Shown piece by piece: positions 5,497 to 33,287 of a DNA stretch of 34,745 nt. Made by a program: the position numbers and the translations under genes. Source of the DNA: Macrostomum lignano (Eukaryota). Numbering within the stretch: position 1 is the first letter of the stretch; each line of letters starts with the position of its first letter. Below the pieces are notes generated by a model. It did no database searches, was not told the DNA's origin, and worked only from the letters and a program-made list of their open reading frames with translations. The DNA lies in assembly GCA_002269645.1 (NCBI GenBank), contig NIVC01004804.1, positions 1 to 34,745 on the forward strand, written 5' to 3'.

Positions 5497-5563
5497 TGCA
5501 CTACTAAGATTCGAACCCAGATCGCTGCATTAGCAGTCCAGTCTGTTCGCATCTATGCTATCT
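5497..5563 (-). other. tRNA-derived (pseudo-tRNA / SINE head-like) segment inside the Helitron-like element
   Basis: The minus strand shows an A-box-like TAGCATAGATG, an anticodon-like arm CTGGA-CTGCTAA-TGCAG and a T-arm/B-box CTGGG-TTCGAAT-CTTAG. The acceptor stem does not pair. A second copy lies at 1-50. Confidence 0.45.
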
Positions 5564-6621: not shown

Positions 6622-7847
6622 CTACTGAATCACCCAGCTATGACTGGCATTACTTTGAACAAGTTTATTAAGTCCTCTTATTGAAACGCAACACAGCGTC
6701 AAACAAACAATGCAATCTAAATCATTCTGATATATTTTTTCACTTATTTTTTACTCATACAAGCAAATACTCCATGATCAGGAATCCCTGATCTAAGACT
6801 ACAATTCAAAGCAATTGACAAATGTTGTGAAGGAGTGCTAAATTGCAAGGTAGTTTTGAAAGTGCCTCAGAGAATTACTCGTAGGATTGAGAGAACATTT
6901 ACCTCTATATGATTCATGGGAGCAATTGTAGCCCACCTGAAGTGTGCATAGGGAATGGGGCGTGAGAGACACCTCAGCCAGGGACTACTCAAAGTAGTCT
7001 CTGACCTCAGCCTCTGGCAGAAGAGAACTAGCTAGCTATTTTAAAATCGTTTTTTTAATCGGGCAATCATACAGTCGCCCATAATTAATTGTGAGCTTTT
7101 TAGTAGGAATCCTTTTTCTCCTTTCTACTTAAGATAATTTAATCAGTAGTTTGCTTTCAATCAGGAATTCTTCGTTTTTATATTATAGCTACTTATAAAA
7201 ACCGCGGTATTTGCAGAAATTTTGCTTCAATCTGGGCCATATAGATTTGGGTCAAAGTGATAGAGAGGACTCGTACTGATGCAACAAACCGCATTGAAAC
7301 CAGCTAAGATGCTGAGTAAGTAACTGTTAAGAAATTAGTCAAATTTATTAGTAGAATTATTGAATTGAAGCTGCTTAAAATGGCTTTTTAAACCTGAGCA
7401 GAGGCTGCAAGCATGCGCCTGCTTCATGAGAGATTCTACTAACGAAATCTTAGTAGGCTTAATTGAGAAAACAAGGCTTATAATAGATATAGGCTATAGC
7501 CGCATTTACAAATTCAGAGCATACAAATAGGGAGAGGAAAATTTAGATTGGTAGATATAAGTGAGTTACTTTTGGGAAAATTTATAAGTGTCAATACGCC
7601 GCTTCACGTCAACCAATGCAAGTTCATTTCGTCATTTTACACAAAATACCTATTTCGAGTACTCGCACTAACACAGCTATTGCCTCATGAAAATATTTGA
7701 TGGAAAATGCGTTTTATATTTTTAGTGATCCACGCTACTTTAGATACTAAAGATTTCAGCTTATAAATCCTTCAGTGGTCATTGACACACTTGCCAATTT
7801 TTTCGCCAAAAGTAGGTTCTCCAAAATCTTCAAAAATCGACTGAACA

Positions 7848-8346
7848 TCACGTCGGTGAAGGGTGAAGCCGCCGGGCTGCCACGAATTCTCCAGCAAGCA
7901 GCGCCAAGCCCATCGCGTAGAAACAGCCGGCTACCGCGTACGGACCCGCAGCAATGCCTAAATTGATCGCATCAGCAGATCCAGCTGTTCTCGAGGTTTC
8001 TTTGGCTCAGACTGCACCAGTCTCCGGCTGGAAGTATCTCTGTTTCAGCATCGGGATCTGGCCTGCCTCGTGTAGTTGGCGCATGCTGAATAAAATTTGC
8101 AGGGTTGCAACAAACGAATTTTGACTGATCAAAGCTCTACGTGCGTAGTCGTCATCGATAAATGAAAATTCGCTTACTATTAGTTGATAGCCTTTCCGTA
8201 CACAGCATCCTCTGGCATTATGAAGGCCACAGTCGCGGCGTTGAAAACTTCCTTGACTATAAGTACCAGCGACTGCAGTTTATTTGCACCAGGTATTCGA
8301 TCAGTGCTACGTCACCCATGCAAGCGACCTTGTTGTTATTGTCCAT
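7848..8346 (-). pseudogene. Copy A': disabled exons 11 (8346-8178) and 12 (8085-7848) of an iGluR-like paralog
   Basis: Exon 11 reads MDNNNKVACMGD...NCSRWY/KEVFNAATVAFIMPEDA, with a 2-nt frameshift and TAA at 8182-8180. Exon 12 reads MRQLHEAGQ...GAV*AKE...INLGIAAGPYAVAGCFYAMGLALLAGEF, with TGA at 8009-8007. GT-AG sites and intron phases match copy D. Confidence 0.85.
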
Positions 8347-9159
8347 CTGTGGGAGCAACAGAAAAACAAATAATTGAGGGAGCGCTTTTAAAATCCGCAG
8401 TTGCGGCTGTCGTTTTGAAAAAACTTCTTCAAAACCTTATATTTTGCAGCGCACATTTCGAACATTAAAAAGGCTTAGAAGAACGCTTCAATAATTCGAT
8501 CTCTAATACCTCTAAAGAAATCAGGGAGTTTATTGTCGTTTATGAGTAGAAATAAAACTCAAGTCTCGAAAACTTGACCTCTTTACCCCATAGTTATCAT
8601 CAGGATAAGGATGCAAATCAAAACAGACGTGTAAATGTAGGATTCAATACTTAGTTTTGAGCGCAAGACAAACCAAGCATTGAGTAGTATTGTAATCTTC
8701 GTATATCGTGTTACAATAGACAGGAATAGACGGAGAAGGTTGATAATGCTGATCATTTCTGCATGGAAGTCGATGATTAGACATGATTTCAATGAGCTCA
8801 AAATTCAAAAGGCTGAGGTTTGAAGGCTGAGAAAGAATTTATGAGAGAGCTTGCTGCTGGCAACCTCTGTAGGGAAGTTTTTGCTTGGAAGTTCGAAGTT
8901 AAACTTCCGAATGAATGAACCAAAATAATCATAACATATCATAAATAATATCATATCATGGGCAATGAACTGATAAACTGTACGATTTTTAAGTGCTTTT
9001 ACTCTTTTGCTATGACACGAGTTAGAACTACTCATAACAAGCATTAGAAGACCCATTTGATTCCTACGAGAGATTTCCGTCAAAATATAGGACTGATGCT
9101 CTTGTAAAATTGTCTTGATGCATTGATAAAAAATTGTTGTACACAGGAACTACTACATT

Positions 9160-9682: not shown

Positions 9683-10943
9683 TCGAGGTAAGTCAGAGGT
9701 ATCTGTCAGCTTTTTTTAAAAAACTTTGATCTCGCTAGTTCCCCGTCCCTTGAAATCAGTAGTCCTGGACAAATATGAGCAACAAAACTGTCCATCATTT
9801 TAAGCTTTCTTTCTGAAGCCATCTCTTGGCCGCTCACTTATATACGAGGGGCACTGAAAAGGTTCTGAGCCTCGGTGTGACGGAGAGAGAATTGGGGCAA
9901 ATACAACCAGCTTTTTTCTACCAAGATGCACTTTTGTGACATTTTGATCGCAGTGCTTCGATACCACTCTGAAAAACTGCGTTGAGCACCCCTCGATCCA
10001 GGAGGTCGCAGCATCCTCCGGTGCATCATCAGTGTTAAATCGCTGCCCACGGAGTGCCCGCTTGAGATGCGGAAACAGCTGTGAAATTCGCTGGGGGCAA
10101 GGTCTGGTGAATAGGTAGGGTTGTGGCAGCTCTGATACGCTGACAGCTGCTGTCTTTGTCAGTCCACTGGTGTGGGCAGGTGTGTTGGTCTGCAGCAGCA
10201 CTACACCACGGCTCAGCACTCCCCGCCGATTCTCCTTGATTGCCTTGAGGCCTTGAGGGCAATCAGATCGGCGTAGTAGGCACCCGTGACTGTCTGCTTG
10301 TGCGGCAGAAAGTCCAGCAGCAGTGGGCTTTTATTAGTGTCCCTCGTAAGAACTTTCATACCTGAGGCTACCCCTACGCTATTTTTTGAGGCAGGGAAAT
10401 TGGCTTTGGAATGATTAATACTTGTAGGACACCTACCAAGGATGGGGTCTGTCCCAAAGTCAAGTCTGCCGCATCTTCGACCGACTGCGCTCCAGCTTTG
10501 ATGGGTCAGACGGTCTCGCACTGCTGGCAAGAAAATTGCAATTGTTGAGAACCCGATTGAGGTGGGCGGACATCTCATGGAGAGGAAGGTTGTAGAAGAC
10601 ATGAAAAGACATATTGATGAGATATGCAGCATGTAGTGTCTGCTAGGTGGGGTCCCATGCTAGGACAACGTATGTGTCGGTGAAGAACAAGGATCACCTA
10701 GGCAGCACTGGCATCCAGGTGCTACCGCACCAAGCCTATTTGCCAGATTTTCCAAAAAGTCAAACCTCGGATCCGGTTTCTAACTCCGATTTTTTGGGTG
10801 TCGTTAATTTTCCTTGTGTTAGGTGCGATGAGAAAATCAAGTCCACTGTGAACTCTGTGTTAGTATGTGCTCACGTACGGTTTCTTTGCCTTTTATGACT
10901 CGCATGACTGGCTGACAACGTCTTGAATTAACTTGACTTATCG
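9683..10943 (+). mobile_element. Old degenerate mariner element (outer), interrupted by a second mariner
   Basis: HLGSTGIQVLPHQAYLPDF (about 10695-10750) resembles the mariner VLPHPPYSPDLAP motif, and DEKIKSTVNSVL follows it. Degenerate TIR-like ends are TA|TCGAGGTAAGTCA (9683) and TGACTTATCG|TA (10943). Confidence 0.5.
9845..10346 (-). mobile_element. Internally deleted mariner (Tc1/mariner) element with a frameshifted transposase C-terminus
   Basis: TIRs CGAGGGGCACTGAAAAG (9845) and CTTTTATTAGTGTCCCTCG (to 10346) are each flanked by TA. Minus-strand peptides LLDFLPHKQTVTGAYYADL, VLLLQTNTPAHTS and LFPHLKRALRGQRF match the mariner catalytic-domain consensus. Confidence 0.85.
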
Positions 10944-11165: not shown

Positions 11166-11400
11166 ATCATTGTTAGTGAAAAAACAAGGTTTGTTAAAAA
11201 ATTAGCACTTAATAAAATGATATTCGCTTTAGATAAAGCTTTAAAAATAGTTTAAAAAGTTGCTAAATGTTGCCTGCAATTGGCTAGAATTTCTTATTGG
11301 CTAGCATGGTGCATATTTACATTAAAAAGCCTGATTCAGCTCGAGTTACCACTCAAAAAATACTCGAAATCCATTGCATCAATAAATTGACGGTCCTGGA

Positions 11401-14400
11401 ATGAAGCTGTTACAATATTTTCTTTTTCTGTACTTAACATCCGCCACCTCAGGCCTGGAGTTCAATCTGACAGTTGTGATTGAGCAGAATGCTGTAAATG
11501 AATCTCTCATCGACCTGGCTGTGAGCAGACGGGTGAACTCGAACTGGAGACTGTTGCCAGGCCACTCAATGTCGCACACAATCGTGCAGGTGCCCGCGGA
11601 TGGAGCTCAGCAGGCTGCTAAAGAAGGTGAATGACTGAGCTATTTTGTTTGCTATCACTTCAGAGACTCAATTCCACAGGGCTTGGTACGTTCCGGAACT
11701 TCGACACCCCTACGAGTCCTTAAATGTTTTTTGGTAGCACCAGTGCGCATCTAGGATTGCACTCGATTGTATTTTGCTCCGAGAAACTTCACTAAGCTTG
11801 CATTACAATTTCACCTACATTATATTAACCGAGTATACTAGCGGGTTGATAAGATCCAACCCACCAACATTAGCCTTGATGATTAGCAGTGAGTCCAATG
11901 GCAGTCGAAAACATCAATGCTTAACCTGCATTTGTTGTGTAAAATTGGAATCCTTTTATATAATTAACTCTATTATACTTACTACACCTGTACCCCACAA
12001 GCTATCTACTTACTCCCAAATTTTTGTATCGTCAGCAGTCTTCTCTAAAAATTCAACTGCTGCTAAAATAATGTACGAGTAAAAGTGTATTTTCGAGCTC
12101 TAGTTGGCCGATACTGCTTGTTTTTGACCCATTCTTTTCCTCGGCTCCGTCCCAGCTAAATATCCTCTATGTTACTCGCCATTCCAGTGTGCTCTCAGGA
12201 TGGTCTGTCAGCTCTACTGGCAATCGGCAGCTGCGGTCTCGTCACGGAGCTGAGCTCGCTAGCCAAGTCGCTGCAACTGCCGTTCATCGCCCTGCCAACC
12301 GCTCTGTGCAGCCCCACTAAACTTCGTGAGCAGTCGAGTGGTCAATGCTATTGCTAACATCCAGTTCGCTTGAAAAATCAGAAGAGTAACCAAAGAGGGA
12401 ATGCTCCAACAACTTCCTAAACGATTCAAGCTTAGCATCGCACAAAGTCGTATCAAGTATCAAGCAAGCGGAGGTTTGCATGCCATGTCAAAATAATTTC
12501 TAGTCTGATTTGAATTGATCAGCCGAGAGAAATTTCCGTGTTGACAGCGATTCTGACAACAAGAATATAATAAACGGCAGGTCCAGTGTCTGACTGTTTT
12601 GAACAAGGAAACAGAGACCAACAGGCGCACCCACTTCAAAAAGAGACTTTTTGTCTTTAATAAAGAAAAGAGGCTTGTTTGACTCCACAAAGCTATCATA
12701 TTTAACCCGCAGCATTTGGGGTCTTCGGCAACCACGAAACATCCGTGATTCTGGACGCAGCAATTTCTGTAATGGAGTCCACTCGAGCGGAAGAGATTGC
12801 AATTTTGTATGACCAGACAAATGGTAGGTAGTGTCAAAATACTATTAAATCATGATTGTGACTACTCAGTATAGGTGACATGAATAAATTCCAAAGTTCC
12901 TCAAACTTTTCAAAATATTTGCAGGAGGAAGAGTTTTAGAATCGCTGCAATCGCGACTCTCAAGCCTCGGCATCAGCTCCGTCCCTTTCAACGTCGACCC
13001 CACACTCAGCGGAGATCTTCTCTCCGAGAGGCTCAGACGCCTCATGAAGAAGCGCCTGTTCAACGCCATCGTCATGGCGACGCCTCGCAACGCGCAAAGC
13101 ATCGTGGCAGCCGCTGCGAACGCCAGCGTCATGCAGCAGAACTACTTCTGGCTCGTGATTGACAGCGGCGGACTCAGCAAGTCCCACCTGATGAGGGTGT
13201 GTCCCAACAACTGCAACCTGGCTCTGCTCAGAGGAGGCACAACTGGCGTCAATCGGCCATCGGACTGTCCGCCTGCAGTGAGAGACGTCTTTCCGAGCTG
13301 CGACACCGACAGCATTCGGTGAGCGCCAGCTGCCCTGCCCTGCCCTGCCCTGCCCTGCCCTGCCCTGCCCTGCCCTGCCCTGCCCTGCCCTGCCCTGCCC
13401 TGCCCTGCCCTGCCCTGCCCTGCCCTGCCCTGCCCTGCCCTGTTCTGCCCTGCCCTGCCCTGCCCTGCCCTGCCCTGCCCTGCCCTGCCCTGCCCTGCCC
13501 TGCCCTGCCCTGCCCTGCCCTGCCCTGCCCTGCCCTGCCCTGCCCTGCCCTGCCCTGCCCTGCCCTGCCCTGCCCTGCCCTGACCTGCCCTGCCCTGCCC
13601 TGCCCTGCCCTGCCCTGCCCTGCCCTGCCCTGCCCTGCCCTGCCCTGCCCTGCCCTCCCCTGCCCTGCCCTGCCCTGCCCTGCCCTGCCCTGCCCTGCCC
13701 TGCCCTGCCCTGCCCTGCCCTGCCCTGCCCTGCCCTGCCCAGCCATGCTTTGCTCTGCTCGATTTGCTCTAAATCTATTTGAGCAGCAGTGTAACTGTAC
13801 TTACATTAATACTCGATCTCCCATCAACCGAAATCTCGCACAGACACTGGACATCCGTCTCGTGGATGCGATCGAGGCTCTGGCGAAGGCTCTCACAGAC
13901 TCGCTGACTCAGCAGGGATTCCGAGAGAGCAACGCGTCATGCTTTCCTCTGCAGCCGTGGTCGTCTGGCTCTCAAGTGCTCAGCAACGTCATGTCTGTGA
14001 GTTTTTGGTTTCTGCATTTGATTTTTTCATTGCAGCGTTTTTGCTCACTTCGACGCTCATTTCATTGCTCATTATTAACAGGTCTACAGGTATTTGAGCA
14101 GTTGCACTCGCCATTTTTAATGCTTTAAAATGGCTTTATGATAGCTTCTGCTCTTTTAACCGCACTTATTTTGCTTTCATGTTTGTGGTCTTTAAAAGTA
14201 GCCAGAATTAATTGTTGGTTCTTTAATTGTTTTTTTACTTTCTCCGTGTTCTGTGGTTCTCCGTAGCAATCGTCATTTCTTGTATTTTCCAGCATCTGAA
14301 TTTTTTAAGAAAATTGAGCGGTTTCTTATTTGTTTTTGAAATTTTCATAACGCATTGAAACATTGCTGCATTTTTTCGCAAATTATAACTCCCTGTGCAT

Positions 14401-14727
14401 CCGCAGCACTGCAAAGTCAAATTTGCACCAAAGTTAAACAAACTGTACCTATTTTTCAGTCTGAGCAAACTCAGCGAGACCGGTCAGCTCCAGCTGCTAT
14501 TCGACAAGTACTACAAGACCGACTCTGATGACCAGTGCAGCGAAGGCGATAGTGACGCGAGCTACACTGGCGCCGAGTCAATCGGTCTGGACACGGTGGC
14601 CGGCTGCTTTGTTGTCACCGGCTGCTTCTTTGCTGTCGGTCTGCTCCTGCTGGCTGGCGAGTTGGTGCTGGCGAGACTGAAGCGGCTGGACTGCTGCGCG
14701 AACAGTAGGGTCGACCCAGTGGAATGA
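11401..14727 (+). pseudogene. Copy B: internally deleted iGluR-like paralog (signal peptide, ATD exons 1-5 and terminal M4 exon; exons 6-11 absent); pseudogene or truncated isoform
   Basis: Exons are 11401-11626, 12188-12325, 12713-12823, 12925-13318, 13844-13996 and 14460-14727. Exons 1, 2, 3 and 5 have the same lengths as in copy D; exon 4 is 1 nt shorter (394 vs 395). Homology to D intron 5 stops at 14113. Confidence 0.8.
13331..13740. repeat. (TGCCC)n pentanucleotide array, about 82 units, in intron 4 of copy B
   Basis: Read directly; starts about 12 nt after the GTGAGC donor. Confidence 0.98.
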
Positions 14728-16386
14728 ATGTCTGTGACTACTGAATCACCCAGCTATGACTGGCATTACTTTGAACAAGTTTATTAAGTCATTCTATTGA
14801 AACACAATACAGAGGCAATCAAACAATGCAATCTAAATCACTCTGATATAGTTTTCCTTTTATTTGATACATGAGCTACCCAAAATCCAACACAGAACTT
14901 GCGTAAAATCGAGCAACAAAAACACGTAAAAACGCTTGCAACTCTCTACGGAGTATTCTGCTGCACATCTTGTACTAAAGCTAAAGGCTGTCACTCTCAA
15001 GACGTTAGTGTCGCTCTGTACGAGCTCTGTAGTATTGTAGAAAGTTGCTGTTTCATAAGAACTTTTTTCTTATCCAAGACTACAATTCAAAGAATGAAAA
15101 TTTGTGAAGATACATGTATGCTAATTCGCAAGCTACGTTTGAAAGTGCTATGGAGAAAAGGGTTTAGAGATATTTACCTTAAAATTATTGGGAGTAATTG
15201 TAGTAGCCCTCACGAAGTGGGCAGAAGCAGCCGAAGAGTTACATGCATTGCAGATGATTATAGATTATATCGATTATAAATAGCAGAAGAGCTATTTTAT
15301 CGATTGAATGGGCAATCACACAGTTGTCCATAGTTGGTGTGTGAAATTTTGAGAAAATGTAGCTTCGGTTGCTACTAATGATATTTTAATCAGTAGTTTG
15401 TTCCATATCAGGAATTCTAGTGTTTCTACTAGCTATATTTTAATTCTTCTTATCATAAATTAAGTTTAATAAAAACCTAGATGCAACCGCGGTACTTGCA
15501 GAAATGTTTGTACCCGTCATATACACGGTTTTCGTCAAGTGATAGGAAGGAGTCGTATGGAAAAATCTTAATTGTTCATTTCAGTTGAATAAAACTAGTT
15601 CAGATGCTGGGTATGTACGAGCGTACGGTAGCTCTTCGTAAAAAATTTAGTCAAATTTATTAGTCAAATGGGTGAAGAAATTAAAGCTGAAAAAAGATAC
15701 GAGTACAAAGATTATTAACTTTAGAGTACACGAATAAAGTGCGATTTTTGTGACTCATATAAGTGAGTTATTTAGAAAATGATCAGTGCCAATAAGCCAT
15801 TTCAAGTTAATAAATTTAATCTACTTCCGTGATTTTACGCATAACACGGCTATATTTTGTCATAGAAAGATTAAACGGATAAACCATTGTCCGTTTTAGT
15901 GTTTCGATCACTTTTTGTGATCTTTTTTTGATCCTTTGTGAGCCTGGAGTGAAATGGTGTTAGCCATCCACCCCTCGCGCTGTACATTGTGCCGCCTTTG
16001 TGCGCCGTCCTTTCTACCCCTCTGTGGGGTGGGGGCTGCTCACCCGCTTATTTATCTGCACGCCGCCCTCTGTTTCCACGTCGCTCGCTTTGGCTTTGCA
16101 GCTCAATTTTTGGTTCAATACTAGAACTTTTAAACTTATAATTATACGGTCGTAATTCCTACACTGGTCGTTGATACACTTGCATAATAGCAGGTGCGAC
16201 ACAATCTAAAAACTTGATCGATAAAATTGTTGTCGAAAGAAGCCGCGAGTGGGAAATAAGCCAACTAAATACCAGCATGGGCTAAAAGTACAATAAAAAC
16301 TTTCATAAAAACCTCTGAAAATGTTTCGCCCAAAGGCAGGTTGTCCAAAAACTGCAAAAAATCGATCGAACATCACCCTGTGAAGG
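14215..16386. repeat. Diverged segmental duplicate of about 6065-7862 (last intron, terminal exon and convergent intergenic region)
   Basis: Collinear shared words include AAAGTTAAACAAACTGTACCTATTTTTCAG, AAGACTACAATTCAAAG, TTTAATCAGTAGTTTG, ACCGCGGTA(T/C)TTGCAGAAAT, TTAGTCAAATTTATTAGT, ATATAAGTGAGTTA and GAACATCAC. Confidence 0.8.
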
Positions 16387-19300
16387 TGTTGGGAAACACA
16401 AATGCACCGCCGCTCTTCTGAAACAATTTCGTCAGCGAGCCGCTGCTGAACCGACCGCTCAGCTGGAACCGAGCTGCCGCTCCCACCTGCTCAGTGAATG
16501 ATGCAACGATCTCAACGCCCTGAGCGTTGAAGAATCCTGTTGTCGAGTTGTAGGAAATCTCACCGCGACCCGAGTCGAAGCTCGATAGCTGAAATGAGAC
16601 AGCGGCGACTGCAACTGCTCATATCTGAGATCAGTTAATGATGAGCAGTGGAATGTACAATAAAGTGGGCTGTCAAATGCTGCGAGCACGAACTCACAGA
16701 CATGATTTTGCTGAGCACTTGAGCGCCAGACGACCACGGCTGCAGAGGAAAGCATGATGCGTTGCTCTCTTGGAATCCCGGCTGAGCCAGCGAGTCTGTG
16801 AAAGCCTTCGCCAGAGCCTCGATCGCATCCACGAGACGGATGTCCAGTGTCTGTGCGAGATTTCGGTTGATGGGAGATCGAGTATTATTGGAATATTCTT
16901 CTGTGAGTGTATGTGATTGAATAGTTTCCCTATAGTCTAAAAGTCTATTGTCTAGAGAGACAATAGCACACAGTCTTGGTCAAAAAATTCTAAATTTAGA
17001 TTTAGTCTTGGATTTAGAATTCCTTGTCTTGGCATAGGTAGAGACTGTTTTTGGAGGTAGTCAATGGCCATAGACAATTTTTTTCGAGAAAAGTCAGTGT
17101 AGACTGTATCATGTTGGCGTCATAATATAATAACGAGATCAAATGAGTTACTAAGTAATAGCCTTTTTTCTACAGGCTTGTAATGTCAATGACAGGAAGA
17201 ATTACCTACAATTACTAAACGACAAATGGAAGAAAATGCAAGAAATGAGAGATCAAAAGGTATTTTAGCAAGATCGGCAGGGCAGGGCAGGGCAGGGCAG
17301 GGCAGCTGGCGCTCACCCGAATTGACGCCAGTTGTGCCTCCTCTGAGCAGAGCCAGGTTGCAGTTGTTGGGACACACCCTCATCAGGTGGGACTTGCTGA
17401 GTCCGCCGCTGTCAATCACGAGCCAGAAGTAGTTCTGCTGCATGACGCTGGCGTTCGCAGCGGCTGCCACGATGCTTTGCGCGTTGCGAGGCGTCGCCAT
17501 GACGATGGCGTTGAACAGGCGCTTCTTCATGAGGCGTCTGAGCCTCTCGGAGAGAAGATCTCCGCTGAGCGTGGGGTCGGCGTTAAAAGGGACGGAGCTG
17601 ATGCCGATGCTCGAGAGTCGCGTCTGCAGCAGCTGTATGAAGCCATTCTCTGTGAAATTAGATAAATAATAGTGTCTGCACAAGTGTACGCGAATTTTGC
17701 ATCAAGTTTTAAGGTCAAAACGGGCCGCATGCTTAGAACCTTGTCTCGAATAGTTTTCCCGGACGTGGTATTCTGTCTTGGTACCTTAGACTAGTCTTAC
17801 TTACATGTAGCTTCTTTGGGAAGTTAATCATTGACAAAGCATGGACGGCTTATTAAAACTCTTCAGTGTTCTTTAATAAGAGCGTAGTTATTGGGAAAAA
17901 GTACAAACTGCACGCTATAAGTTGTGAACACGAGCATAGTCACTACTGTTAGCTTTTCAGACCATAAGAAGATGAAGAAGACAAGAAAAGGCTTTACGAC
18001 TGATAACAAGCTCGTCTGAGCCTTGGTGTCTCAGTAGCTTCCTTAGTGTCAGGGTTCATTTAGTTATTCCTAGACTAGCAAAGCTTAATCTTTGTTAGCT
18101 TCTGCTAGCTGGCACTATTATCAATAATACAGTTGCATCATTTCAGAGGCTGAAATCGACTTGTCTTATAGTACACACGAACTCAAGTAGTCAGTCATCG
18201 TGGCGTCAGGATGCTTGCTTTCTTTGAAATATAAATAGCTCGGAGTTGCTCTAAAGGGCGAACTAATGAATCGATATGCAATTCAATGGACGAAAGAAGT
18301 CCTCTTTGATCTTGCTTGCTAACTAAAAGCTAGCTAATTTTTAAAGTCTCTTTGTAGCCTGAAATGACTTCCCAACAGTTTGGAGCTCATTAAACAAAGC
18401 AATCGCAAATTATGTATTCAAAGAAGGCTGCGCTGACTGAAAGCGCGAACGATGAGACAAATAGGATGGGAAAGTTGGGAGAAACATCGTCATGCCGAGC
18501 ACAAAAGAAGAGGAGACATGTCAAACACAAAAGATTTATGGGGGAATTGCTAATAAGCTGGCTTTCAGGCTTTCATTTTCCTAAAAAAACTAGCAGTAGT
18601 TGCCTGTGAAATTTCAAAATCTACATTTTATTTAGAAAAATATTCTTTTCTTTGTTGCCCCAAAAGTGAAGAGGGCAAATATTACTAGTGAAAGGATCCC
18701 TGTGCATTACTGTTTAATATATTAGATTTTCCAAGCTTACCCTGAGACATGTCGTAAAATATGATGACCTCTTTTTTCCTCAAGTGTTGAAATTGTTTTA
18801 ACGGTTGCTTCCAGTAGTTCAGTCACCCTGTGGCTACCAACAGCGTCGTAGTCTGCAAGGAAATAATAAACTATCTGTGCACAATATTAAAGTCTGAAAC
18901 TTCTGAAACTCTAAAAGTACATGACATCAGAAAAAGTATTTTCGCATCTTATTTTAGAACGAGAGAAATATTGACTGGTATTATTGCAGCTATATGATAT
19001 GCATATCGATTTTGATAAATCGATAAATAGGTGTTCCCATTTGATCACCACAGACAGAACAATTGTCTGACATTAATAGCCTAAATATCAACTGTTAATG
19101 TCAAGTCTATTGCTGTCAAATCAGACTTTTGTGGGATAACTCTTGGTAGTCAGTAATAAAATACGATTGTAGTTAGTAAACACTTTTTATAACTGTCAAT
19201 CAATTTACAAGAGAAAATCCATTCCTTACTTGATTTACTTCGCTTGTAATGATAGCCAAAATTGAAAGCTGCCAACTGTACAGAATGTAAGATAAACAAG

Positions 19301-19883
19301 TCTGTTTAACACTCATGATTTAACTTTACTCACGAAAATGTGTGCTGCTGCACAGAGCGGTTGGAAGGGCGATGAACGGCAGTTGCAGGGACTTGGACAG
19401 CGAGCTCAGGTCCGAGAGGAGACCGCAGCTGCCGATTGCCAGAAGAGCTGACAGACTGGACTGAGAGCACACTGGAATTGAGTTAAGCTAACGCTTACCC
19501 TTACTCTCATGTATTTCGAGCACAATAAAAGACAATAGTCAAAACTACAACCACAACCCAAGTGTATGGATATTCAATATTTGCATCAGACTAACCAAAC
19601 GAATAATTTTAAATCTAATTTACTCAAGCATGGCATGCTTGCAGCCAAGCTACTCACCCTCCTTAGCAGCCTGCTGAGCTCCATCCTTGGATACCTGCAC
19701 GATCGCATGCGACATTGAGTGGCCTGGCAACAGTCTCCAGTTCGAGTTCACCCGTCTGCTCACAGCCAGGTCGATTAGGGAGCTGCTCACTGCATTCTGC
19801 TCAATCACAACTGCCAGCTTGAAGTCCAGGCCAGAGGTGGCTGACACAAAGCATGCCAATAGCACCGATGCTATCGGCAACAT
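16373..19883 (-). pseudogene. Copy C: ATD-only iGluR-like paralog (exons 1-6, stop at the ATD/S1 boundary) with two apparent frameshifts
   Basis: Exons are 19883-19658, 19471-19334, 18852-18741 (112 nt, +1), 17649-17317 (333 nt, 62-nt deletion), 16850-16698 and 16588-16373 (ends ...FPNTFTG*). It has a signal peptide MLPIASVLLACFVSATSG and GT-AG sites homologous to copy D. Confidence 0.85.
17276..17305. repeat. Short (GGCAG)6, the minus-strand counterpart of the intron 4 (CCCTG)n array
   Basis: Read directly; same position after the GTGAGCGCCAGCTG donor as in copies B and D. Confidence 0.9.
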
Positions 19884-23060: not shown

Positions 23061-24487
23061 AAAAATTCTGCGCTATTAAAGCATGAAACTTTGACCCTAT
23101 AATAGAATATATTTTTGACGCGGATTTCCCTACCGTTAACGCTTATTAAATTGAATTATTACGGTCATAAATGCCAAACAAAATAGAGAATCTTGCTTGT
23201 CCTATTGCTCAAAAATCCCTATAAGTAACCCAGGAATTTTGTTACAATGTAATAACTATGTGAATGCTCTGTTACTTTTCTATCGGTCAACCAGAGGCGG
23301 CAGTGTTGTCGGTGAAGGCTCTGAACAATTCAGACTGATCACATGTAGCCAGTCTGACGTCTTTAATTTGCAAATTGAATTATTTGCTCTGCAGCATTGT
23401 CGTGATCCGCTTGTTTTGCTATGGAAACATACAGTGTTTTTACTTAGTTTTATTGATGTTTATTTGATTAACAAAAAATTAGCCATATATAAATTGACAT
23501 CAAAAGGATACTATCCACGCTCATTAGTCGAAACAATGCCAATACATTGAGCTACTTCGTAGATAATTGCTTCCGTGCATCATTGCTCAACCAATGGACA
23601 CTCTGTCTGCAATAATTGTCACGGAAGCAAAACAGCCATCACACAAAATACCCAATAAAAGCGGTAATTGAGTTTGCTGTGACTGTGGACAGCGCATTAG
23701 ATAGACAGAAACAAAATTTTACAGCCAGGAACAATGACGTATGCGAACACTGCATTTAGCGGGTCGCTTTCACAAGCCCTAAATTTCACAACGTCGCAAG
23801 ACACAAACTTTCATAAGCTCTAAATTTCATAAACCCTAATTTTCACATCGTCGAAAAGTTGTGCACAGTATTTCATAAGCTCTAAATTTCACAACGCCTA
23901 AAAACACTATAGAGATACAATCTTTCACAAGACCTAAATTTTACAACGCCTAAAACACTATGGAGAGACAATCTTTCATAAGACCTAAATTTCACAACGT
24001 CTAAAAGCACGCGTGAATTACGTAGTAAAAGGCAAGCATACGGATACAAGTATTATTGATTGCTAAAATAAAATTGGCTACCTCAATTGCAAACTTTTCA
24101 AGTCAGGACTCAGTTGCTACTGGTACTTGGTAGTGTGGTACATAAATGAAGTTTTAATGTTTCTCATGTTGCAAAACCAGGTAGCGCTACTTGGAAAGTT
24201 TATTACAAAAAAGATTCTACCTGAATGGACTTCGAAAGTTTAAAATTAGAAGACTTTTTTTCAAGTTTCCAAGTTGCAACACCAGTAAAAATCCATAGTC
24301 CGGAAGAGGGGTGGTACGCCGGATTAATCCGGCGTACACTCACGACTTTTGGTGCACACTTGGCGTACAATTTTTTACTTTTTGAAATCTGGCGTACTAT
24401 CTGGCGTGTAAAAATGCATATGGGTGTGCTCATCTTGGATTTCATGTTAAGTTTTCGGGGTTCTCTGGAAAAGCGTTGTCTTTTCAA

Positions 24488-24574: not shown

Positions 24575-25056
24575 GTTTCTTTGGTGAAGTGTTAATGGGT
24601 AATGTGAGTAAAGAGTAATGGAGGGGTTTATACTCACTCGTTTATTGTATGAATCGATTTGAAAAAGGAAATACAAGATTGATTTTGGAAAGGAGTGGTT
24701 GAAAGATAGTTGGAATTTGAAAACTTATTGTAAAAAATCTTGTGCCATTTTGTCAATCCTATGTTTTCACTTCATGAATTTTTAATAAACGGACTTTGGA
24801 TTGAGTTTGAAAATTTGAAACTCAGAATTAGATTAGCTACCACTATACTACGGTAGCCCTTGAAGATGAGAATGATAATTTGCAATTTTATGTGACTTAT
24901 GCAAGTCGTTATAGTTAATTAAGCCAGCAAAGAGAATTTATGTGCTATTTGATAGTACTTTGGGCAACATACATGTACGCTCTACGCTGTAGAGTGTAGC
25001 TACCACATGAGCTAATTAACTGTCACTAAAACGGGCTCTCGATTCAGTACTTATGA

Positions 25057-26606
25057 AAGATTGTATCTCCATAGTGTTTTTAGGCGTTGTGAAATTTAGG
25101 TCTTATGAAAGATTGTATCTCCATAGTGTTTTTAGGCGTTGTGAAATTTAGGTCTTGTGAAAGATTGTATCTCCATAGTGTTTTTAGGCGTTGTGAAATT
25201 TAGGTCTTGTGAAAGATTGTATCTCCATAGTGTTTTTAGGCGTTGTGAAATTTAGGTCTTATGAAAGATTGTACCTCCATAGTGTTTTTAGGCGTTGTGA
25301 AATTTAGGTCTTATGAAAGATTGTACCTCCATAGTGTTTTTAGGCGTTGTGAAATTTAGGTCTTATGAAAGATTGTACCTCCATAGTGTTTTTAGGCGTT
25401 GTGAAATTTAGGTCTTATGAAAGATTGTACCTCCATAGTGTTTTTAGGCGTTGTGAAATTTAGGTCTTGTGAAAGATTGTATCTCCATAGTGTTTTTAGG
25501 CGTTGTGAAATTTAGGTCTTATGAAAGATTGTACCTCCATAGTGTTTTTAGGCGTTGTGAAATTTAGGTCTTATGAAAGATTGTACTTCCATAGTGTTTT
25601 TAGGCGTTGTGAAATTTAGGTCTTATGAAAGATTGTACCTCCATAGTGTTTTTAGGCGTTGTGAAATTTAGGTCTTGTGAAAGATTGTATCTCCATAGTG
25701 TTTTTAGGCGTTGTGAAATTTAGGTCTTGTGAAAGATTGTATCTCCATAGTGTTTTTAGGCGTTGTGAAGTTTAGGTCTTATGAAAGATTGTACCTCCAT
25801 AGTGTTTTTAGGCGTTGTGAAATTTAGGTCTTATGAAAGATTGTACCTCCATAGTGTTTTTAGGCGTTGTGAAATTTAGGTCTTGTGAAAGATTGTATCT
25901 CCATAGTGTTTTTAGGCGTTGTGAAATTTAGGTCTTATGAAAGATTGTACCTCCATAGTGTTTTTAGGCGTTGTGAAATTTAGGTCTTATGAAAGATTGT
26001 ACCTCCATAGTGTTTTTAGGCGTTGTGAAATTTAGGTCTTATGAAAGATTGTACCTCCATAGTGTTTTTAGGCGTTGTGAAATTTAGGTCTTGTGAAAGA
26101 TTGTATCTCCATAGTGTTTTTAGGCGTTGTGAAATTTAGGTCTTATGAAAGATTGTACCTCCATAGTGTTTTTAGGCGTTGTGAAATTTAGGTCTTATGA
26201 AAGATTGTACTTCCATAGTGTTTTTAGGCGTTGTGAAATTTAGGTCTTATGAAAGATTGTACCTCCATAGTGTTTTTAGGCGTTGTGAAATTTAGGTCTT
26301 GTGAAAGATTGTATCTCCATAGTGTTTTTAGGCGTTGTGAAATTTAGGTCTTGTGAAAGACTGTATCTCCATAGTGTTTTTAGGCGTTGTGAAGTTTAGG
26401 TCTTATGAAAGATTGTACCTCCATAGTGTTTTTAGGCGTTGTGAAATTTAGGTCTTATGAAAGATTGTACCTCCATAGTGTTTTTAGGCGTTGTGAAATT
26501 TAGGTCTTGTGAAAGATTGTATCTCCATAGTGTTTTTAGGCGTTGTGAAATTTAGGTCTTATGAAAGATTGTACCTCCATAGTGTTTTTAGGCGTTGTGA
26601 AATTTA
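25057..26606. repeat. 52-bp satellite array (about 30 units), followed by 16-bp sub-repeats to about 26680
   Basis: The unit is GAAAGATTGTA(C/T)CTCCATAGTGTTTTTAGGCGTTGTGAAATTTAGGTCTT(A/G)T and is highly homogeneous. Confidence 0.98.
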
Positions 26607-27072
26607 GAGCTTGTGAAATTTAGAGCTTGTGAAATTTAGAGCTTGTGAAATTTAGAGATAGTGAAATTTAGGGCTTTTGAAATTCTGTGCATGCCTTTTA
26701 GGTGTTATGAAATTTAGGGCTTGTGAAATTTAGGTCTTGTGAAATCTGCATTGCTTATTTTCGACGTTGTGAAAATTAGGGTTTATGAAATATAGGTCTT
26801 ATGAAAGGTTCTGGTTTCGACGTTGTGAAAATTAGGGTTTGTGAATTGTCATTTAGCATGTCATTTTGAAGAAGGAAACTGCTCTCCTAATTAAAATATC
26901 TTTTTCTACGGCTTCATTAAAAAATAAAAGCTTTTCTTTGGTAACTTTATTCAACCTACTATCAATGCACCGAGCGTTTTTCTTTTAATCGTCACGGTTC
27001 AATCTTTTTACTGGAATTGTGTAAGAAATATATTGTTATAGAAAATTAAAATATAATGGGACCATTAAAGGT

Positions 27073-27463: not shown

Positions 27464-30400
27464 ATGAAACTGACCACTTTTGTCTTACTGTTGAATTCAA
27501 TGTCAGCCACCTCTGGCCTGGACTTCAAGCTGGCAGTTGTGATTGAGCAGAATGCAGTGAGCAGCTCCCTCATTGATCTGGCTGTGAGCAGACGGGTGAA
27601 CTCAAACTGGAGACTGTTGCCAGGCCACTCAATGTCGCATGCAATTGTGCAGGTGTCCGCGGATGGAGCTCAGCAGGCTGCTAAAAAAGGTGAGTATCCT
27701 AGATTTAGGCGGTTGAAACTAGTCTGTAACTGTAGTCACATCGTTATGAAAGTTGGGGTTCTCGGGCACAAAACCGGCGTCAAGTTTGATGATGAGTTTG
27801 GCGCTCATGAGGACCCAACTCCACTTTGCCCATGCCGAATTAATAGTGATAGTGATCAAGAAAGTAAGCGTCGCATCTTTATGCTTATGGGTCAACGGAA
27901 TCCAACATATCAAAAGTGTTAGCCACTCGCGATTTTAGTTTGCTCCCAGTCAGGTCTGTCAGCACTTCTGGCAATCGGCAGCTGCGGTCTCCTCTCGGAC
28001 CTGAGCTCGCTGTCCAAGTCCCTGCAACTGCCGTTCATCGCCCTGCCAACCGCTCTGTGCGAGGAGGGATATTTTCGTGAGTAACAGTGAAAAATCATGA
28101 AATCTATCGGAGTTCGGTTAATTTTCGAAAAATAACTCAAGTAAGCTAAAATTACTGACAAATAATGTTTTATGAAGTCATTTTCTCGGGCTATTTTTAC
28201 CGCTCTTTCTCTTTCAAGATGTTTCCGATAAAAAAGAGACTACTAGACTACACTAGACTATAACAAAGCACAAAATATTCTGTGATAACTAAGTGTTCCT
28301 AGGGTTCCTTCTAACAAACCTGTGACCGTGACACAGTAAGTTACACTTACTAAATCACCAATTGCGAAAAATATTTTCCAATGCAATTCGAAAAACACAA
28401 GCTATTGACCCTTTAGGGTACGGGGTCATTGGCAGTCACTCAGTGTCTGAGGTTATCGGCGCTGCAGCCGAAGTCATCTCGACCCTGGATGAAAAACAAG
28501 TGGCCATTTTGTACGACTCATCCAACGGTAATTGCTAATTTAATAACTACAAGTATTTTTATGATGCTGCTGCGATTAATAGCTCGTAGTAATTAGTTAA
28601 TAGAACTGTAACTCAAATTCCACTCTACATTTCTTATCTCACAGAGAATGGCTTCATACAGCTGCTGCAGACGCAACTGTCAAGCATCGGCATCAGCTCC
28701 GTCCCTTTCAATGTCGACCCCACACTCAGCGGAGATCTTCTCTCCGAGAAGCTCAGACGCCTCATGAAGAAGCGCCTGTTCAACGCCATCGTCATGGCGA
28801 CGCCTCGCAACGTGCAAAGCATCGCGGCAGCCGCTGCGAACTCCAGCGTCATGCAGCAGAACTACTTCTGGCTCGTGATTGACAGCGGCGGACTCAGCAA
28901 GTCCCACCTGATGCGGGTGTGTCCCAACAGCTGCAACCTGGCTCTGTTCAGAGGAGGCACAACTGGCGTCAATCGGCCATCGGACTGTCCGCCTGCAGTG
29001 AGAGACGTCTTTCCGAGCTGCGACACCGACAGCATTCGGGTGAGCGCCAGCTGCCGTGCTGTGCCCTGCCGTGCCCTGCCCTGCCCTGCCCTGCCCTGCC
29101 CTGCCCTGCCCTGCCCTGCCCTGCGCTGCCCTGCCCTGCCCTGCCCTGCCCTGCCCTGCCCTGCCCTGCCCTGCCCTGCCCTGCCCTGCCCTGCCCTGCC
29201 CTGCCCTGCCCTGCCCTGCCCTGCCCTGCCCTGCCCTGCCCTGCCCTGCCCTGCCCTGCCCTGCCCTGCCCTGCCCTGCCCTGCCCTGCCCTGCCCTGCC
29301 CTGCCCTGCCCTGCCCTGCCCTGCCCTGCCCTGCCCTGCCCTGCCCTGCCCTGCCCTGCCCTGCCCTGCCCTGCCCTGCACTGCCCTGCCCTGCCCTGCC
29401 CTTCCCTGCCCTGCCCTGCCCTACCTTGCTCAATCACCAACACACTGAGAGCATCAAAGCTCACTCACTCACATAACTATATGTACTCGATCTCCTATCA
29501 ACCGAAATCTCGCACAGACACTGGACATCCGTCTCGTGGATGCGATCGAGGCTCTGGCGAAGGCTCTCACAGACTCGCTGACTCAGCCAGGATTCCGAGA
29601 GAGCAACGCGTCATGCTTTCCTCTGCAGCCGTGGTCGTCTGGTGCTCAAGTGCTCAGCAAAGTCATGTCTGTGAGTTCGTGCTCGCTGCTCACTTTATTG
29701 TGCATTTTACTGCTCATCGTTAACTGATCACAGATGTGAGCAGTTGCACTCGCCACTCTGTCTCATCTCAGCTATCGAGCTTCGACTCGGGTCGCGGTGA
29801 GATTTCCTACAACTCGACAACAGGATTCTTCAACGCTCAGGGCGTTGAGATCGTTGCGTCATTCACCGAGCAGTCGGGAGTGGCAGCTCGGTTCGAGCTG
29901 AGCGGTCGGTTCAGCAGCGGCTCGTTGAGGAAATTGTTCCACAAGAGCGGCGGTGCATTCGTGTTTCCCAACACCTTCACCGGGTTCAAGAATGCTACGT
30001 TGGTCGTTTGCTGTCCTATGGTAATAATTTCGTAAAAATATCACAAATTTTATTTTTTAAATCGAGAGGACTTAAGCCAATTTCTTGTTTTTTTCAAGGA
30101 TTTTCCGTCCGCCGGTTTAATTGAAGATCTGGGCGATAATTTTTACAAAGGATATGGAATGGCTCCAGATATCCTTAAATATCTGGCTTCTAAATTGAAC
30201 TTTCGGTACGTGAGAAAATTGGAGTGTAAAAGTGCGAGACAATCCACTCACATGCCCGCTCTTGAAAATTTCAGATACGTCCTCAAGAAACCTTACGACG
30301 GAGAGTGGGGTCGCCCGAATCCCGGCTCCAGGATCTTCACCGGCTGCGTTGGAGAGACTCAACAGGGGGTTTGTCAAGCAAACAGTTTTGTCGTACTTTT

Positions 30401-33287
30401 TAAAATGTCGGTGCAGTGAGGCGACACCGGTCCTCTCGAAAAATTGAATTCAATTAGTAATCAGAACGAGAATCTAAAATGAGCATCTTGAGATGAGATG
30501 TTACGCTGGTATTTTGTTGTCAGCATTTTTCGTTTTGCATAGTCCTTTAAAAATTTCAGTACTCAACAGCATCATAATTTTATTTTCTAAACGTCTTTTT
30601 CGAGGTGGTCGACTTCTCCGCCGGGTCGTTTACAAAAACAACCGTACGAGATACTGTGATTGACTTCTCGGCAGACCTGTACCCCGACTACAACGCCATT
30701 CTGATTCCGAGACCACAAGAAGCGTCCAAGATGTGGAACGTGTTCCTCCCTCTGCACTGGCAGGTGTGGGCCTGTCTGGCTGCCTCATTCTTAGTTGCCG
30801 CATTCGCTCTTTGGTTGCTTGCGTACTTTTCCCCGTTCTCCGCCATCAATCTGGGCCTGGAGGGCGCTATCAGTGACGAGGCCAGCTACTTCGAGTACCT
30901 GTGGACCATAATCGGCAGCTTCATGCAGCAGGGACAGGATTTCTATCCCTACGCTACGTCTCCTCGGGTGGTCCTTGCTTTCTGGTGGTTTTTCAATGTT
31001 ATCATTTATGCGGCTTATACAGGTAATCGCCAAGTTACATGTACGCACATGTACATGATGAGATTTAAATTCAGATATTTTGAGCAGTGTTGTCATATTA
31101 ACTTTGACTTCATCTTCAGCCTTTCTTACATCGTTTCTGACGATCACAACCACGGAATTGTCAATAAGGACGCTGCAGGATTTGGTCGCGCAAACTGACG
31201 TCGTACCTGGTTACATTCCGGGTAGTAATTTGGACACTATGTTAAAAAGCAGCACGTCTGGCATCTACAAGCAGATCGCTGACATCATGGTTCCTGCGCC
31301 TGAGTGCCCGAGTTTGGTAGGCCTAAAACAGGGCTTGGGATACATTAGTTTGAGCCGTTTTTTTCTGAAATCGATCACATAGATACCTACCGGCAAACCA
31401 TTTTTGGTTTATAGGACTAGCAGTCAGCTCCCCGTGTTGGAGAGAAAAAAATTTAATGATTTTTTTGAGTAAACTACATGTAGCTTCTCCTTGCAATAAA
31501 CAAATCGTTCACGCCTTGACATCTTAGCTATTCCCCCGTAAGCCTTGAAATCTCAGCAATTCCCCCAAACCCTAACCCTCACCCTAACCTTAACCCTAAA
31601 ACTAACCTTAATCTTAACCATGACCCTAACCCTAATTTCGTGTTCTTTCGACAAAAAGGCACAATTTCTGTAAAACTCTGGGTCAGTTAAATAGTAAGAA
31701 TACCAAGCCAATTTTCCGCCCGTCGAACTACCAAAGGTGGGGGGGGCGGCATTCTCCTGCGCCGGAAAGGAGCAACGCAGGCGCACGAAATTCAAGAAAA
31801 CGGCTAAATTTTTTTTTTTGCACCTTCTCAAACAAGAATCAAATCGCCAGCCTTTGGGACCGTCGAGATATTCGACGATTTTGCCAGAAGGTTCGATTTT
31901 TTCCATAAGGCTAATGCATTCAATGCCAATGGAAATTCCCCCTTGGTAGTTCTACTGTTAATTAGAGACGCATTCAAGACAGACGTTCCTATTAGACTTT
32001 ACGTGTTCTCTCTTTTAGTTAAATAATACTTGTCTATACGTACGAAGCTTAGGGGAGAAATTGCGCATACAAGTTTTTTTTATTTGCCTTTCACAACGCA
32101 CCAATTTCAGTCACTGCATAGCAACATAGCCTGCATGAGCGATTTAATGGCAATGAAAGCCATGGCCAAGCTCAATTGTTCTCGCGTGTACTTCGCTGAC
32201 GAAGTGTTCAATGCGGCTACTGTGGCGTTTTTGTACCCCGAGGATGCCTTCTTTGGCCAGCTGATGGACTACTAGTGAGTATCAGTAGTATATACTACTC
32301 AGTAGAAAACTCGCACAGCTTGCAGAAGGTGCTTGCTACGTCGAAAGTTTCATTTACCTTTTTGGAAATTTACAAGGGTGCGACTCTGTCAAGTTTCTTG
32401 GGTTCGACCCTAAAAACTTACTATAGTTATCTGCACTGCTCTGCTCTTGCATCAATACGATGTTCTGTCGACAAATCGATATTCATTTTATATTAGCTCA
32501 TATTTTTAATATTGATTGAGGAATATTTTGTGCTATACTCTAAGCTACAGTTGTTTATTGCAGACTGAGGTATCCTTTATTACAAGTCCTCCTTCGCAAG
32601 CAGTTCTAGGGTGCCGAATCAGAGGCAGGGGGCTATTTGCATCCTGGCGCACTTTAAGCGACATTGTTATCTCGTACACAACCGGCGAGAGGAATCCCTG
32701 CCCACCCCGCCGACTCCCCTGAGCAGGCACACAAGCGCGCGGATACGTACGCAGTCATACGCACAGGCACACACTCACACAGGAGTGCACAGCGGCCCTG
32801 ATTTTATTTATCGTTAGGCATGTACACTTCACTGTGCCTTGGGGTTTGGCCCTAATTTCACAGGCAGAACTAAGTCGAGATTCCTATTTAGCCCCAAATT
32901 AATGTGACTGCACTCGGAATCAAGCCTGGGTTGCTGGCACACCAGAGCACCGCGCTGGACCACTGGGAATCGGCCCCCTTACTTGACCAGTACAAGTAGC
33001 AAATAATATAATCGCGCCTGTAATTTATGTACACCGACAGCATTCGAAAGTTCCGAGAGTCTGGTCAACTGCAGCTAGTGACGAACATGTACGACGCGTC
33101 GAACAATATCACCGCTTGTAACACTGGAGTGAGCAGTTCCGCTGCACCAGCGATCAGTCTCGATGTTGTAGCGGGCTGTTTCGCTGTCACCGGAGCTTTT
33201 TACGGCTTTGGACTGGCTCTGCTGATTGGAGAACTGCTCTGCATGAAGATTCGCAGGTCGCAGTGCTGCAATAGCAACTCGGAATGA
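27464..33287 (+). CDS. Copy D: complete divergent ionotropic glutamate receptor-like ligand-gated channel subunit, 12 exons, about 832 aa
   Basis: Exons are 27464-27689, 27939-28076, 28417-28527, 28645-29039, 29518-29670, 29772-30020, 30099-30205, 30275-30368, 30605-31022, 31120-31316, 32111-32274 and 33041-33287. They total 2499 nt, are phase-compatible, use GT-AG throughout and contain no internal stop. Motifs include the signal peptide, KNATLVV, YDGEWG, FTKTTVRDTVIDFS, M1 VFLPLHWQVW, pore LWTIIGSFMQQG, PRVVLAFWWFF, M3 AYTAFLTSFLT, IRTLQDL, S2 Cys pair and M4 ISLDVVAGCF. An upstream in-frame ATG at 27437 is an alternative start. Confidence 0.9.
29052..29421. repeat. (TGCCC)n array, about 74 units, in intron 4 of copy D
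   Basis: Read directly; a few interruptions. Confidence 0.98.
31350..31443 (-). mobile_element. Helitron-like fragment spanning a head-to-tail junction, in intron 10 of copy D
   Basis: TGAGCC(G/A)TTTTTTTCTGAAATC..ATC..ATA...GGA|CTAGCA followed by the hairpin CTCCC-GTGTT-GGGAG matches 456-561. Confidence 0.55.
31569..31635. repeat. Degenerate telomere-like (CCCTAA)n, about 11 hexamers, intronic
   Basis: ACCCTAACCCTCACCCTAACCTTAACCCTAAAACTAACC..., read directly. Confidence 0.8.
32560..32980 (-). mobile_element. Possible SINE-like insertion in intron 11 of copy D
   Basis: The minus strand has a tRNA-like head (AGTGGTCCAGCG...CCAGGCTTGATTCCG, B-box-like), a GC-rich body and an AATAAA-containing tail. 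Boundaries are approximate. Confidence 0.35.

Follow-up and report, generated by a model that had tools for sequence, protein, structure and literature searches.

The 34,745-nucleotide stretch of Macrostomum lignano DNA analyzed here (NCBI GenBank assembly GCA_002269645.1, contig NIVC01004804.1, positions 1 to 34,745 of the forward strand; hereafter the window) carries a gene for a predicted subunit of the ionotropic glutamate receptor (iGluR) superfamily at positions 27464-33287 of the forward strand. The gene is made up of 12 exons and 11 introns, all of which are of the GT...AG type, and its coding sequence of 2499 nt, in which neither an internal stop nor a frameshift is present, encodes a protein of 832 amino acids and terminates in a TGA at 33285-33287, with all 22 splice dinucleotides intact. 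The gene model was built by reading the three forward frames together with the sequence itself and joining the exons; this rebuild from the raw sequence, made independently of the original prediction of a full-length and intact subunit at this locus, arrived at the same start, end and 11 introns. The gene had also been described as invisible to the list of open reading frames (ORFs), which is correct but merely reflects the use of a prokaryote-style ORF list that breaks up a spliced gene and hence shows only fragments of it. The predicted layout of the protein is that of a signal peptide, amino-terminal domain (ATD), S1, M1, re-entrant pore loop, M3, S2, M4 and a short cytoplasmic tail. The gene is real and intact; it adds an apparently unannotated member to a receptor family that has expanded in Macrostomum, and is not a new kind of receptor.

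The ATD is encoded by the first six exons. Exon 1 (27464-27689) harbors the start codon, the signal peptide (residues 1-18, MKLTTFVLLLNSMSATSG) and the beginning of the ATD, ends in the donor AAG/gtgagt and is colinear with the M. lignano proteins P0001 (A0A1I8HJW1) and P0008. Exon 2 (27939-28076; acceptor ttttag, donor gtgagt), exon 3 (28417-28527), exon 4 (28645-29039) and exon 5 (29518-29670) continue the ATD; the junction of exon 2 reads KK-V-CSQSGLS, in register with 'RTVCSESGLS' of P0001, the donor of exon 4 (CGG/gtgagc) lies directly before a (CTGCC)n array, and exon 5 shows 96% identity to the M. lignano proteins P0159 (A0A1I8GRA3) and P0012 (A0A1I8GT76). The end of the ATD, the linker between the ATD and the ligand-binding domain (LBD), and the start of S1 are present on exon 6 (29772-30020). 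S1 continues on exon 7 (30099-30205; donor TCG/gtacgt) and exon 8 (30275-30368), the latter with the DGEWG motif (residues 468-472) that contains the equivalent of W450 (residues of the pocket, pore and gate are given in GluA2 numbering). The donor of exon 8 (GGG/gtttgt) is weak; the junction that it yields, 'GCVGETQQG/VVDFSAG', is in exact register with P0159, P0001 and GluA2. Exon 9 (30605-31022) encodes the end of S1 with the equivalents of T480 and R485 in TKTTVRDTVIDFS, M1, the pore loop FMQQGQD with the equivalents of Q586 and D590, and most of M3, and exon 10 (31120-31316) encodes the end of M3 and the part of S2 with G-S-N-L (positions 653-655); the gate motif AYTAFLTSF straddles the junction of these two exons. 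The D705 equivalent (ACMSD) of S2 and the first Cys of the LBD disulphide are located on exon 11 (32111-32274; donor CTA/gtgagt), whereas the end of S2 with the second Cys, M4 (residues 793-817), the tail and the stop codon are located on exon 12 (33041-33287).

Support for the junctions comes from homology, i.e., from colinear alignment with M. lignano paralogues. P0001 and the gene product share 49% identity over 802 columns with no insertion or deletion at the junctions, save a 5-residue difference just after junction 3, and colinearity with P0159 extends through junctions 5-9 and with P0012 through junctions 5-8. Other splice sites were considered and rejected: an acceptor at 29734 leads to an immediate stop, a donor at 30210 puts exon 8 out of frame, and the later donors of exon 8 would insert residues that have no counterpart in any homologue. 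An in-frame ATG at 27437, 27 nt 5' of the start at 27464, would add nine residues (MLAYSTLYE) to the N-terminus, and which of the two ATGs serves as the start is ambiguous from the sequence alone.

All three Pfam iGluR domains are detected in the gene product with scores that exceed the curated gathering scores, viz., ANF_receptor (residues 39-355, 48.9 bits against a cut-off of 25.4, E-value 6.4e-13), Lig_chan-Glu_bd (residues 439-528, E-value 1.2e-11) and Lig_chan (residues 542-802, E-value 5.9e-30). Among solved structures, GluA2 matches residues 408-822 (E-value 5e-39) and GluD1 matches residues 23-666, and the hydropathy peaks fall at M1, M3 and M4. These matches are far beyond chance. 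Thus, the domain order of the iGluR superfamily (ATD-S1-M1-pore loop-M3-S2-M4) is present in full, as are R485, the acidic residue at position 705 and the LBD disulphide. The SYTANLAAF gate of the superfamily is not retained, as the corresponding AYTAFLTSF matches it at six of the nine positions; this divergence weakens the case for canonical gating but not for membership of the superfamily. The pore motif FMQQG (residues 597-601, positions 30920-30934), with Gln at the Q/R site (586) and Asp at the +4 position (590), is AMPA/kainate-like as the original prediction had stated, and the tail that follows M4, CMKIRRSQCCNSNSE, indeed consists of 15 residues with a CC motif, of which palmitoylation may be conjectured. 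Of the two domains that had been described as too diverged for placement in a named class, the ATD is indeed weakly conserved, reaching by itself an E-value of only 4.6e-4 against the GluK2 ATD, whereas the LBD can be placed, as it retains R485/T480/D705 and the Cys pair and has a pocket signature in common with mollusc and nemertean "delta-1-like" receptors.

The pocket of the gene product is formed by W450, S478, T480, R485, S653, N654, L655 and D705, and the Cys pair of the LBD disulphide is kept at the equivalents of C718 and C773. Of these, R485, T480 and D705 make the contacts to the alpha-carboxyl and alpha-amino groups of a bound amino acid. It has been reported that Arg485 together with an acidic residue at 705 marks amino-acid ligands, and that Gly653/Thr655 mark glutamate whereas Ser653 with a non-polar residue at 655 marks glycine-type ligands (PMC6307864; repeated in PMC8437780). 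Given Ser653/Leu655 in place of Gly/Thr, we infer a small neutral amino acid rather than glutamate as the ligand. A signature comprising W450, [ST]653-N654-[LV]655, D705 and 'G[PS]FT.T..R..VIDF' is common to P0001 and P0024 of Macrostomum and to Pecten, Haliotis and Lineus proteins, is partly present in the rest of the Macrostomum family and was not found in other clades. Thus, the LBD is divergent from the vertebrate classes yet conserved within a spiralian group. All of the Macrostomum family keeps the pore loop with Q586 and D590. In M3, the gate is AYTAFLTSF in the gene, SYTAFLTSM in P0159 and AYTGDLTAH in several other paralogues, and since these paralogues also depart from SYTANLAAF, the divergence of the gate is an inherited family trait and not decay in this copy.

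An exhaustive HMMER search, in which the homologue P0001 stood in for the gene as the query, identified 4676 relatives. The best full-length protein match to the gene product is P0001 itself (E-value 1e-236), and every closest match that was looked up belongs to Macrostomum lignano. The best non-flatworm proteins are those of Haliotis ("delta-1-like", 245 bits), Lineus ("kainate 3-like", 234 bits) and Pecten ("delta-1-like", 223 bits), which align with the gene product from the ATD to M4 with 25-28% identity. Two Delta-clade proteins score lower (P0066 with 175 bits and P0062 with 147 bits), and the lowest scores are obtained against GluN1 (78-84 bits). A neighbor-joining tree was constructed from 421 columns of the LBD and transmembrane domain (TMD) with 100 bootstraps and NMDA receptors as the outgroup; the class references for Phi, Delta, kainate, NMDA and Epsilon were taken from the alignment that accompanies Ramos-Vicente et al. 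2018 (PMC6307864), to which rat GluA2 was added. The gene falls within a Macrostomum family (bootstrap 100), as expected from the predicted lineage-specific expansion, and this family in turn lies in an enclosing group of 54 sequences (bootstrap 80), the labelled ones of which are mostly from molluscs, nemerteans and flatworms. The gene is excluded from the AMPA clade (bootstrap 96), the AMPA + kainate clade (bootstrap 95), the Delta clade (bootstrap 74; human, amphioxus, Tubulanus, Asterias and Saccoglossus) and the amphioxus Phi clade (bootstrap 97). Branching within the enclosing group has bootstraps of 25 or less and a sister relation to the mollusc or nemertean sequences is not resolved.

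The gene does not group with the two derived amphioxus GluF sequences that represented the Phi class in the reference set. It has been noted that no Phi subunit has Q586 (PMC6307864), a residue that is present in the gene. The gene also differs from the NMDA class in its pore, which has QQG and not NSG ('LLNSG' is absent). When trimmed blocks of Drosophila IR25a and IR8a (Croset et al. 2010) were used to rank about 93 sequences, the gene ranked 86th and 91st, respectively, while an NMDAR1 control found the NMDA sequences first; the hallmarks of the ionotropic receptor (IR) IR25a, viz., SVMAERE..DFTVPYY in S1 and TPQGGGEAP in the pore, are absent from the gene product. Judged by the tree and this ranking, the gene has no orthologue among the AMPA, kainate, Delta, NMDA or IR25a/IR8a receptors and is placed in a Macrostomum-specific family, which itself sits in a group made up mostly of lophotrochozoan sequences. 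Neither analysis yielded the one-to-one orthology to an AMPA, kainate or IR25a-type gene that would have overturned the original prediction. Searches of papers found no phylogeny of flatworm iGluRs, and the names of spiralian receptors other than AMPA, kainate and NMDA are inconsistent across the literature. For example, the Lottia gene Lotgi 110568 is LgigIR297 in Table S3 of Croset et al. 2010 and GluD1-2alpha_Lgi in the source data of Ramos-Vicente et al. 2018. A word-index search with Haliotis P0095 gave four matches, of which one is auto-named "IR93a-like", and was not informative.

Similarity to the Macrostomum paralogues is uneven along the gene. The identity to P0159, which does not cover exons 1-4, is 96% in exon 5, 88% in exon 6 and 40-72% in exons 7-10. 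Thus, the ATD module appears to be duplicated or homogenized independently of the LBD/pore module, and this mosaic similarity, together with two truncated copies in the window that contain the ATD module alone and end at exon 5 or 6, suggests module-wise duplication or gene conversion of the ATD, which is the assembly domain. Of the public M. lignano models of this family, several are fragments or are chimeras with scrambled reading frames. For example, P0002 (A0A1I8GU87) consists of a piece of the ATD from exons 5-6, about 400 unrelated residues and the pore region of another paralogue, its first 109 residues being 94-96% identical to copies in the window, which points to M. lignano or a very close relative as the source of the window, and the reading frame of P0003 (A0A1I8F...), another M. 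lignano model, switches repeatedly. Most of the Macrostomum family tails seen have a Cys about 7-12 residues after M4 (QCC, DCC, DCV or DCI; P0001, P0019, P0020 and the exons in the window), and among these tails the doubled CC is present only in this gene and in two lone terminal exons of the window.

The gene had been expected to lie among clustered paralogues; however, the other copies in the window are not intact genes but two truncated ATD-only copies and lone or broken terminal exons. Partial copy A (11400-14003, forward strand) retains only exons 1, 2 (3'-truncated), 4 and 5 with 85-97% nucleotide identity to the gene, and partial copy B (16375-19846, reverse strand) retains exons 1 (5'-truncated), 2, 4 (3'-truncated), 5 and 6 (3'-truncated) with 92-96% identity. 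Exon 3 is missing or unrecognizable in both, and neither has any LBD or pore exon. The synonymous divergence (dS) from the gene is about 0.11 for both copies, and the ratio of nonsynonymous to synonymous divergence (dN/dS) is 0.44 for copy A and 0.25 for copy B. A lone terminal exon encoding M4 and tail (14455-14697, forward strand) derives from a more distant paralogue with 42% amino acid identity to exon 12 and a tail ending in RLKRLDCCANSRVDPVE before the stop; it follows copy A, but its acceptor phase, judged from the exon phases of the gene, would not fit exon 5 of that copy. A second lone M4/tail exon of the same paralogue type, also with the CC motif, is located at 6340-6582 (forward strand) with only satellite DNA upstream. 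Both exons carry the CC within "RLKRLDCCAN" and each is embedded in one of two 450-bp blocks (6300-6749 and 14418-14865) that are 93.6% identical. A pseudogene fragment on the reverse strand (7872-8352) resembles exons 11-12 of a further paralogue (about 35% identity) and has an in-frame stop in its last exon. Thus, with truncated copies of the ATD module and stray terminal exons around the gene, the family appears to grow and decay by segmental duplication.

Much of the remaining window is filled by satellites of 23, 18 and 52 bp and by the intronic (CTGCC)n arrays. Intron 4 of the gene contains a (CTGCC)n minisatellite of about 74 copies (29051-29422, forward strand), and an array of the same unit is present in the matching intron of copy A (13330-13748); these arrays, of about 74-84 copies, give rise to long spurious 'CPALP/GQGRA' ORFs on both strands and lift the local GC content to 63-66%. 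A degenerate interstitial telomere-like tract of AACCCT/CCCTAA units is found in intron 10 (31568-31636). The 23-bp satellite TTTAATGTTTGACATGGTGGCTC (1558-5441, about 169 copies, 83% matches) has a strong G/T strand skew and is flanked by a direct repeat of about 530 bp that is 91% identical (1-534 and 5514-6031). The 18-bp tandem repeat CCCCAGATAGCAAGCATC (702-1343, about 35 copies) gives rise to repetitive ORFs that overlap one another on the minus strand. The 52-bp satellite (25050-26845, about 30 copies, 97% matches) lies just upstream of the gene, with a short related array in inverted orientation about 1 kb away (23767-24010). Two adjacent ORFs in different frames on the reverse strand (9800-10632) resemble the C-terminal part of a mariner/Tc1-type transposase, and although their match to Pfam Transposase_1 is below the cut-off (E-value 0.042, 14.2 bits), they probably represent a decayed transposon. 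Apart from this sub-threshold match, Pfam searches of the window's other long ORFs were negative, and neither Rfam nor a tRNA scan gave a hit in the window.

Based on these features, we consider it likely that the region encodes one subunit of a tetrameric cation channel of the iGluR superfamily that is gated by an extracellular ligand and that operates as follows. The agonist would be a small neutral amino acid or a relative thereof, of the glycine, alanine, D-serine or GABA type, rather than glutamate, bound in a pocket that is conserved with the mollusc and nemertean relatives. The open pore, with its Q586 and D590, would be permeable to Ca2+ and subject to polyamine block, like that of unedited AMPA/kainate receptors. 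In M3, the divergence of the gate from SYTANLAAF to AYTAFLTSF may alter gating, or may make the subunit dependent on paralogous partners.

A number of observations weigh against this interpretation. No identical or near-identical protein is present in a collection of 5.8 billion proteins, and the ORF of the last exon is not on record in public assemblies; hence the gene is apparently unannotated. The departure of the gate from a nearly invariant sequence means that homomeric function is not assured. Close paralogous iGluRs differ widely in their agonists (PMC13648236), which makes the ligand rule of positions 653/655 unreliable. The dN/dS values rest on few substitutions and on ATD exons only. 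The neighbor-joining tree, based on 421 columns, is weakly resolved inside the enclosing group, and the placement of this group beside a Trichoplax Epsilon sequence, and with it the position relative to AKDF and Epsilon, has a bootstrap of only 22.

Among the alternatives, that of an environmental chemoreceptor comparable to the variant IRs of protostomes, i.e., a tuning subunit of a lineage-specific sensory repertoire and not a synaptic receptor, survives best, though we regard it as unlikely. In its favor, the family is lineage-specific and multi-copy and does not belong to the conserved synaptic classes, and many iGluR-family genes of lophotrochozoans bear IR names in Croset et al. 2010, a usage under which this gene could be named an IR. 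However, the ranking near the bottom with the IR25a and IR8a blocks and the absence of the IR25a hallmarks argue against such a relationship. Most tuning IRs have lost at least one residue of the R/T/D triad, whereas the gene keeps this triad in full along with its ATD. The ATD has been described as largely absent in IRs other than IR25a and IR8a (PMC12837371).

It is improbable, in our assessment, that the gene is a recently dead or never-expressed copy whose frame is open only because little time has elapsed. It is surrounded by several satellites and by at least five iGluR fragments, public collections hold no matching protein or gene call, and its M3 gate motif is degenerate relative to SYTANLAAF. 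On the other hand, 2499 nt over 12 exons are free of stops and frameshifts with 22 of 22 splice dinucleotides intact, all critical residues that were checked are kept (R485, T480, D705, C718/C773, Q586 and D590), the departure of the gate is common to the family, and dN/dS is below 0.5. We give about the same low credence to a further proposal, that the Macrostomum family, in which a rewritten M3 gate (AYTAFLTSF or AYTGDLTAH) is set in an iGluR whose amino-acid-binding part is otherwise intact, could be a flatworm-specific receptor class with unusual gating (such as constitutive or ligand-inhibited opening) or with an agonist that is no classical transmitter, which might sense environmental amino acids and apparently diversifies as one near-identical ATD module is joined to different LBD/pore modules. 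Least probable is a non-conducting or obligately heteromeric subunit, i.e., a Delta-like trans-synaptic organizer or modulatory partner whose own pore is not opened by ligand, In support of it, the M3 gate is altered at three of nine positions, including both alanines that adjoin the Lurcher site, the PDB match that spans the ATD as well as the LBD is GluD1, and 'delta-1-like' is the automatic name of the closest relatives outside the family. However, the gene is not part of the clade formed by the Delta class, and the conservation of the pore loop, Q586 and D590 in the whole Macrostomum family argues for selection on conduction.

The public models of this flatworm iGluR family are for the most part fragmentary or chimeric, and the gene provides a correct one of full length. 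Macrostomum, a model for regeneration and neurobiology, carries its own expansion of receptors other than AMPA, kainate and NMDA, which combines a conserved lophotrochozoan ligand pocket with a divergent channel gate. The gene is a target for testing both the tolerance of the SYTANLAAF gate and the ligand of the mollusc/nemertean/flatworm "delta-1-like" pocket. Current views of iGluR evolution are not overturned by it, as lineage-specific expansions are common.

Like the protostome IRs, the gene belongs to a lineage-specific multi-copy branch of iGluRs in a protostome, and IR25a and IR8a also keep the ATD; however, there is no likeness to these two beyond the superfamily level, and the loss of the ATD and of core residues that characterizes the insect tuning IRs is not seen in the gene. 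With the Delta receptors (GluD1/GluD2) it shares Ser653, a non-polar residue at 655 and Asp705, as in the D-serine/glycine-binding GluD2, but it lies outside the Delta clade, which has nemertean, echinoderm and hemichordate members. The AMPA/kainate receptors (GluA2, GluK2) resemble it in fold, domain order, FMQQG, Q at the Q/R site, the acidic +4 residue, R485, T480, the acidic residue at 705, the disulphide and a short tail with Cys near M4, whereas the identity over LBD and TMD is only about 26-30%, the gene lies outside the AMPA + kainate clade, and it has S/L in place of G/T at 653/655, W in place of Y450 and AYTAFLTSF in place of SYTANLAAF. The mollusc and nemertean receptors auto-annotated as 'delta-1-like' or 'kainate 3-like' (Haliotis XP_067672970.1, Pecten XP_033737179.1 and Lineus XP_064635760.1), which are the best non-flatworm matches, share with the gene W450, P/S478, T480, R485, [ST]653-N654-L655 and D705 as well as membership of the bootstrap-80 group, but their gate is the canonical TYTANLAAF and their Q/R site is occupied by N, E or H, as against AYTAFLTSF and Q in the gene. 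These receptors may correspond to the molluscan 'Phi/Zeta' or 'GluR-m' groups of the literature. Closest are the uncharacterized Macrostomum paralogues (A0A1I8HJW1, A0A1I8GRA3, A0A1I8GT76 and others): although the best full-length member is only 49% identical to the gene, they have the same architecture and the same register of exon junctions, and have in common with it the pore motif 'SF[LM]QQGQDFYP', the diverged M3 gate, G[ST]N[LI] in S2 and the juxtamembrane Cys of the tail.

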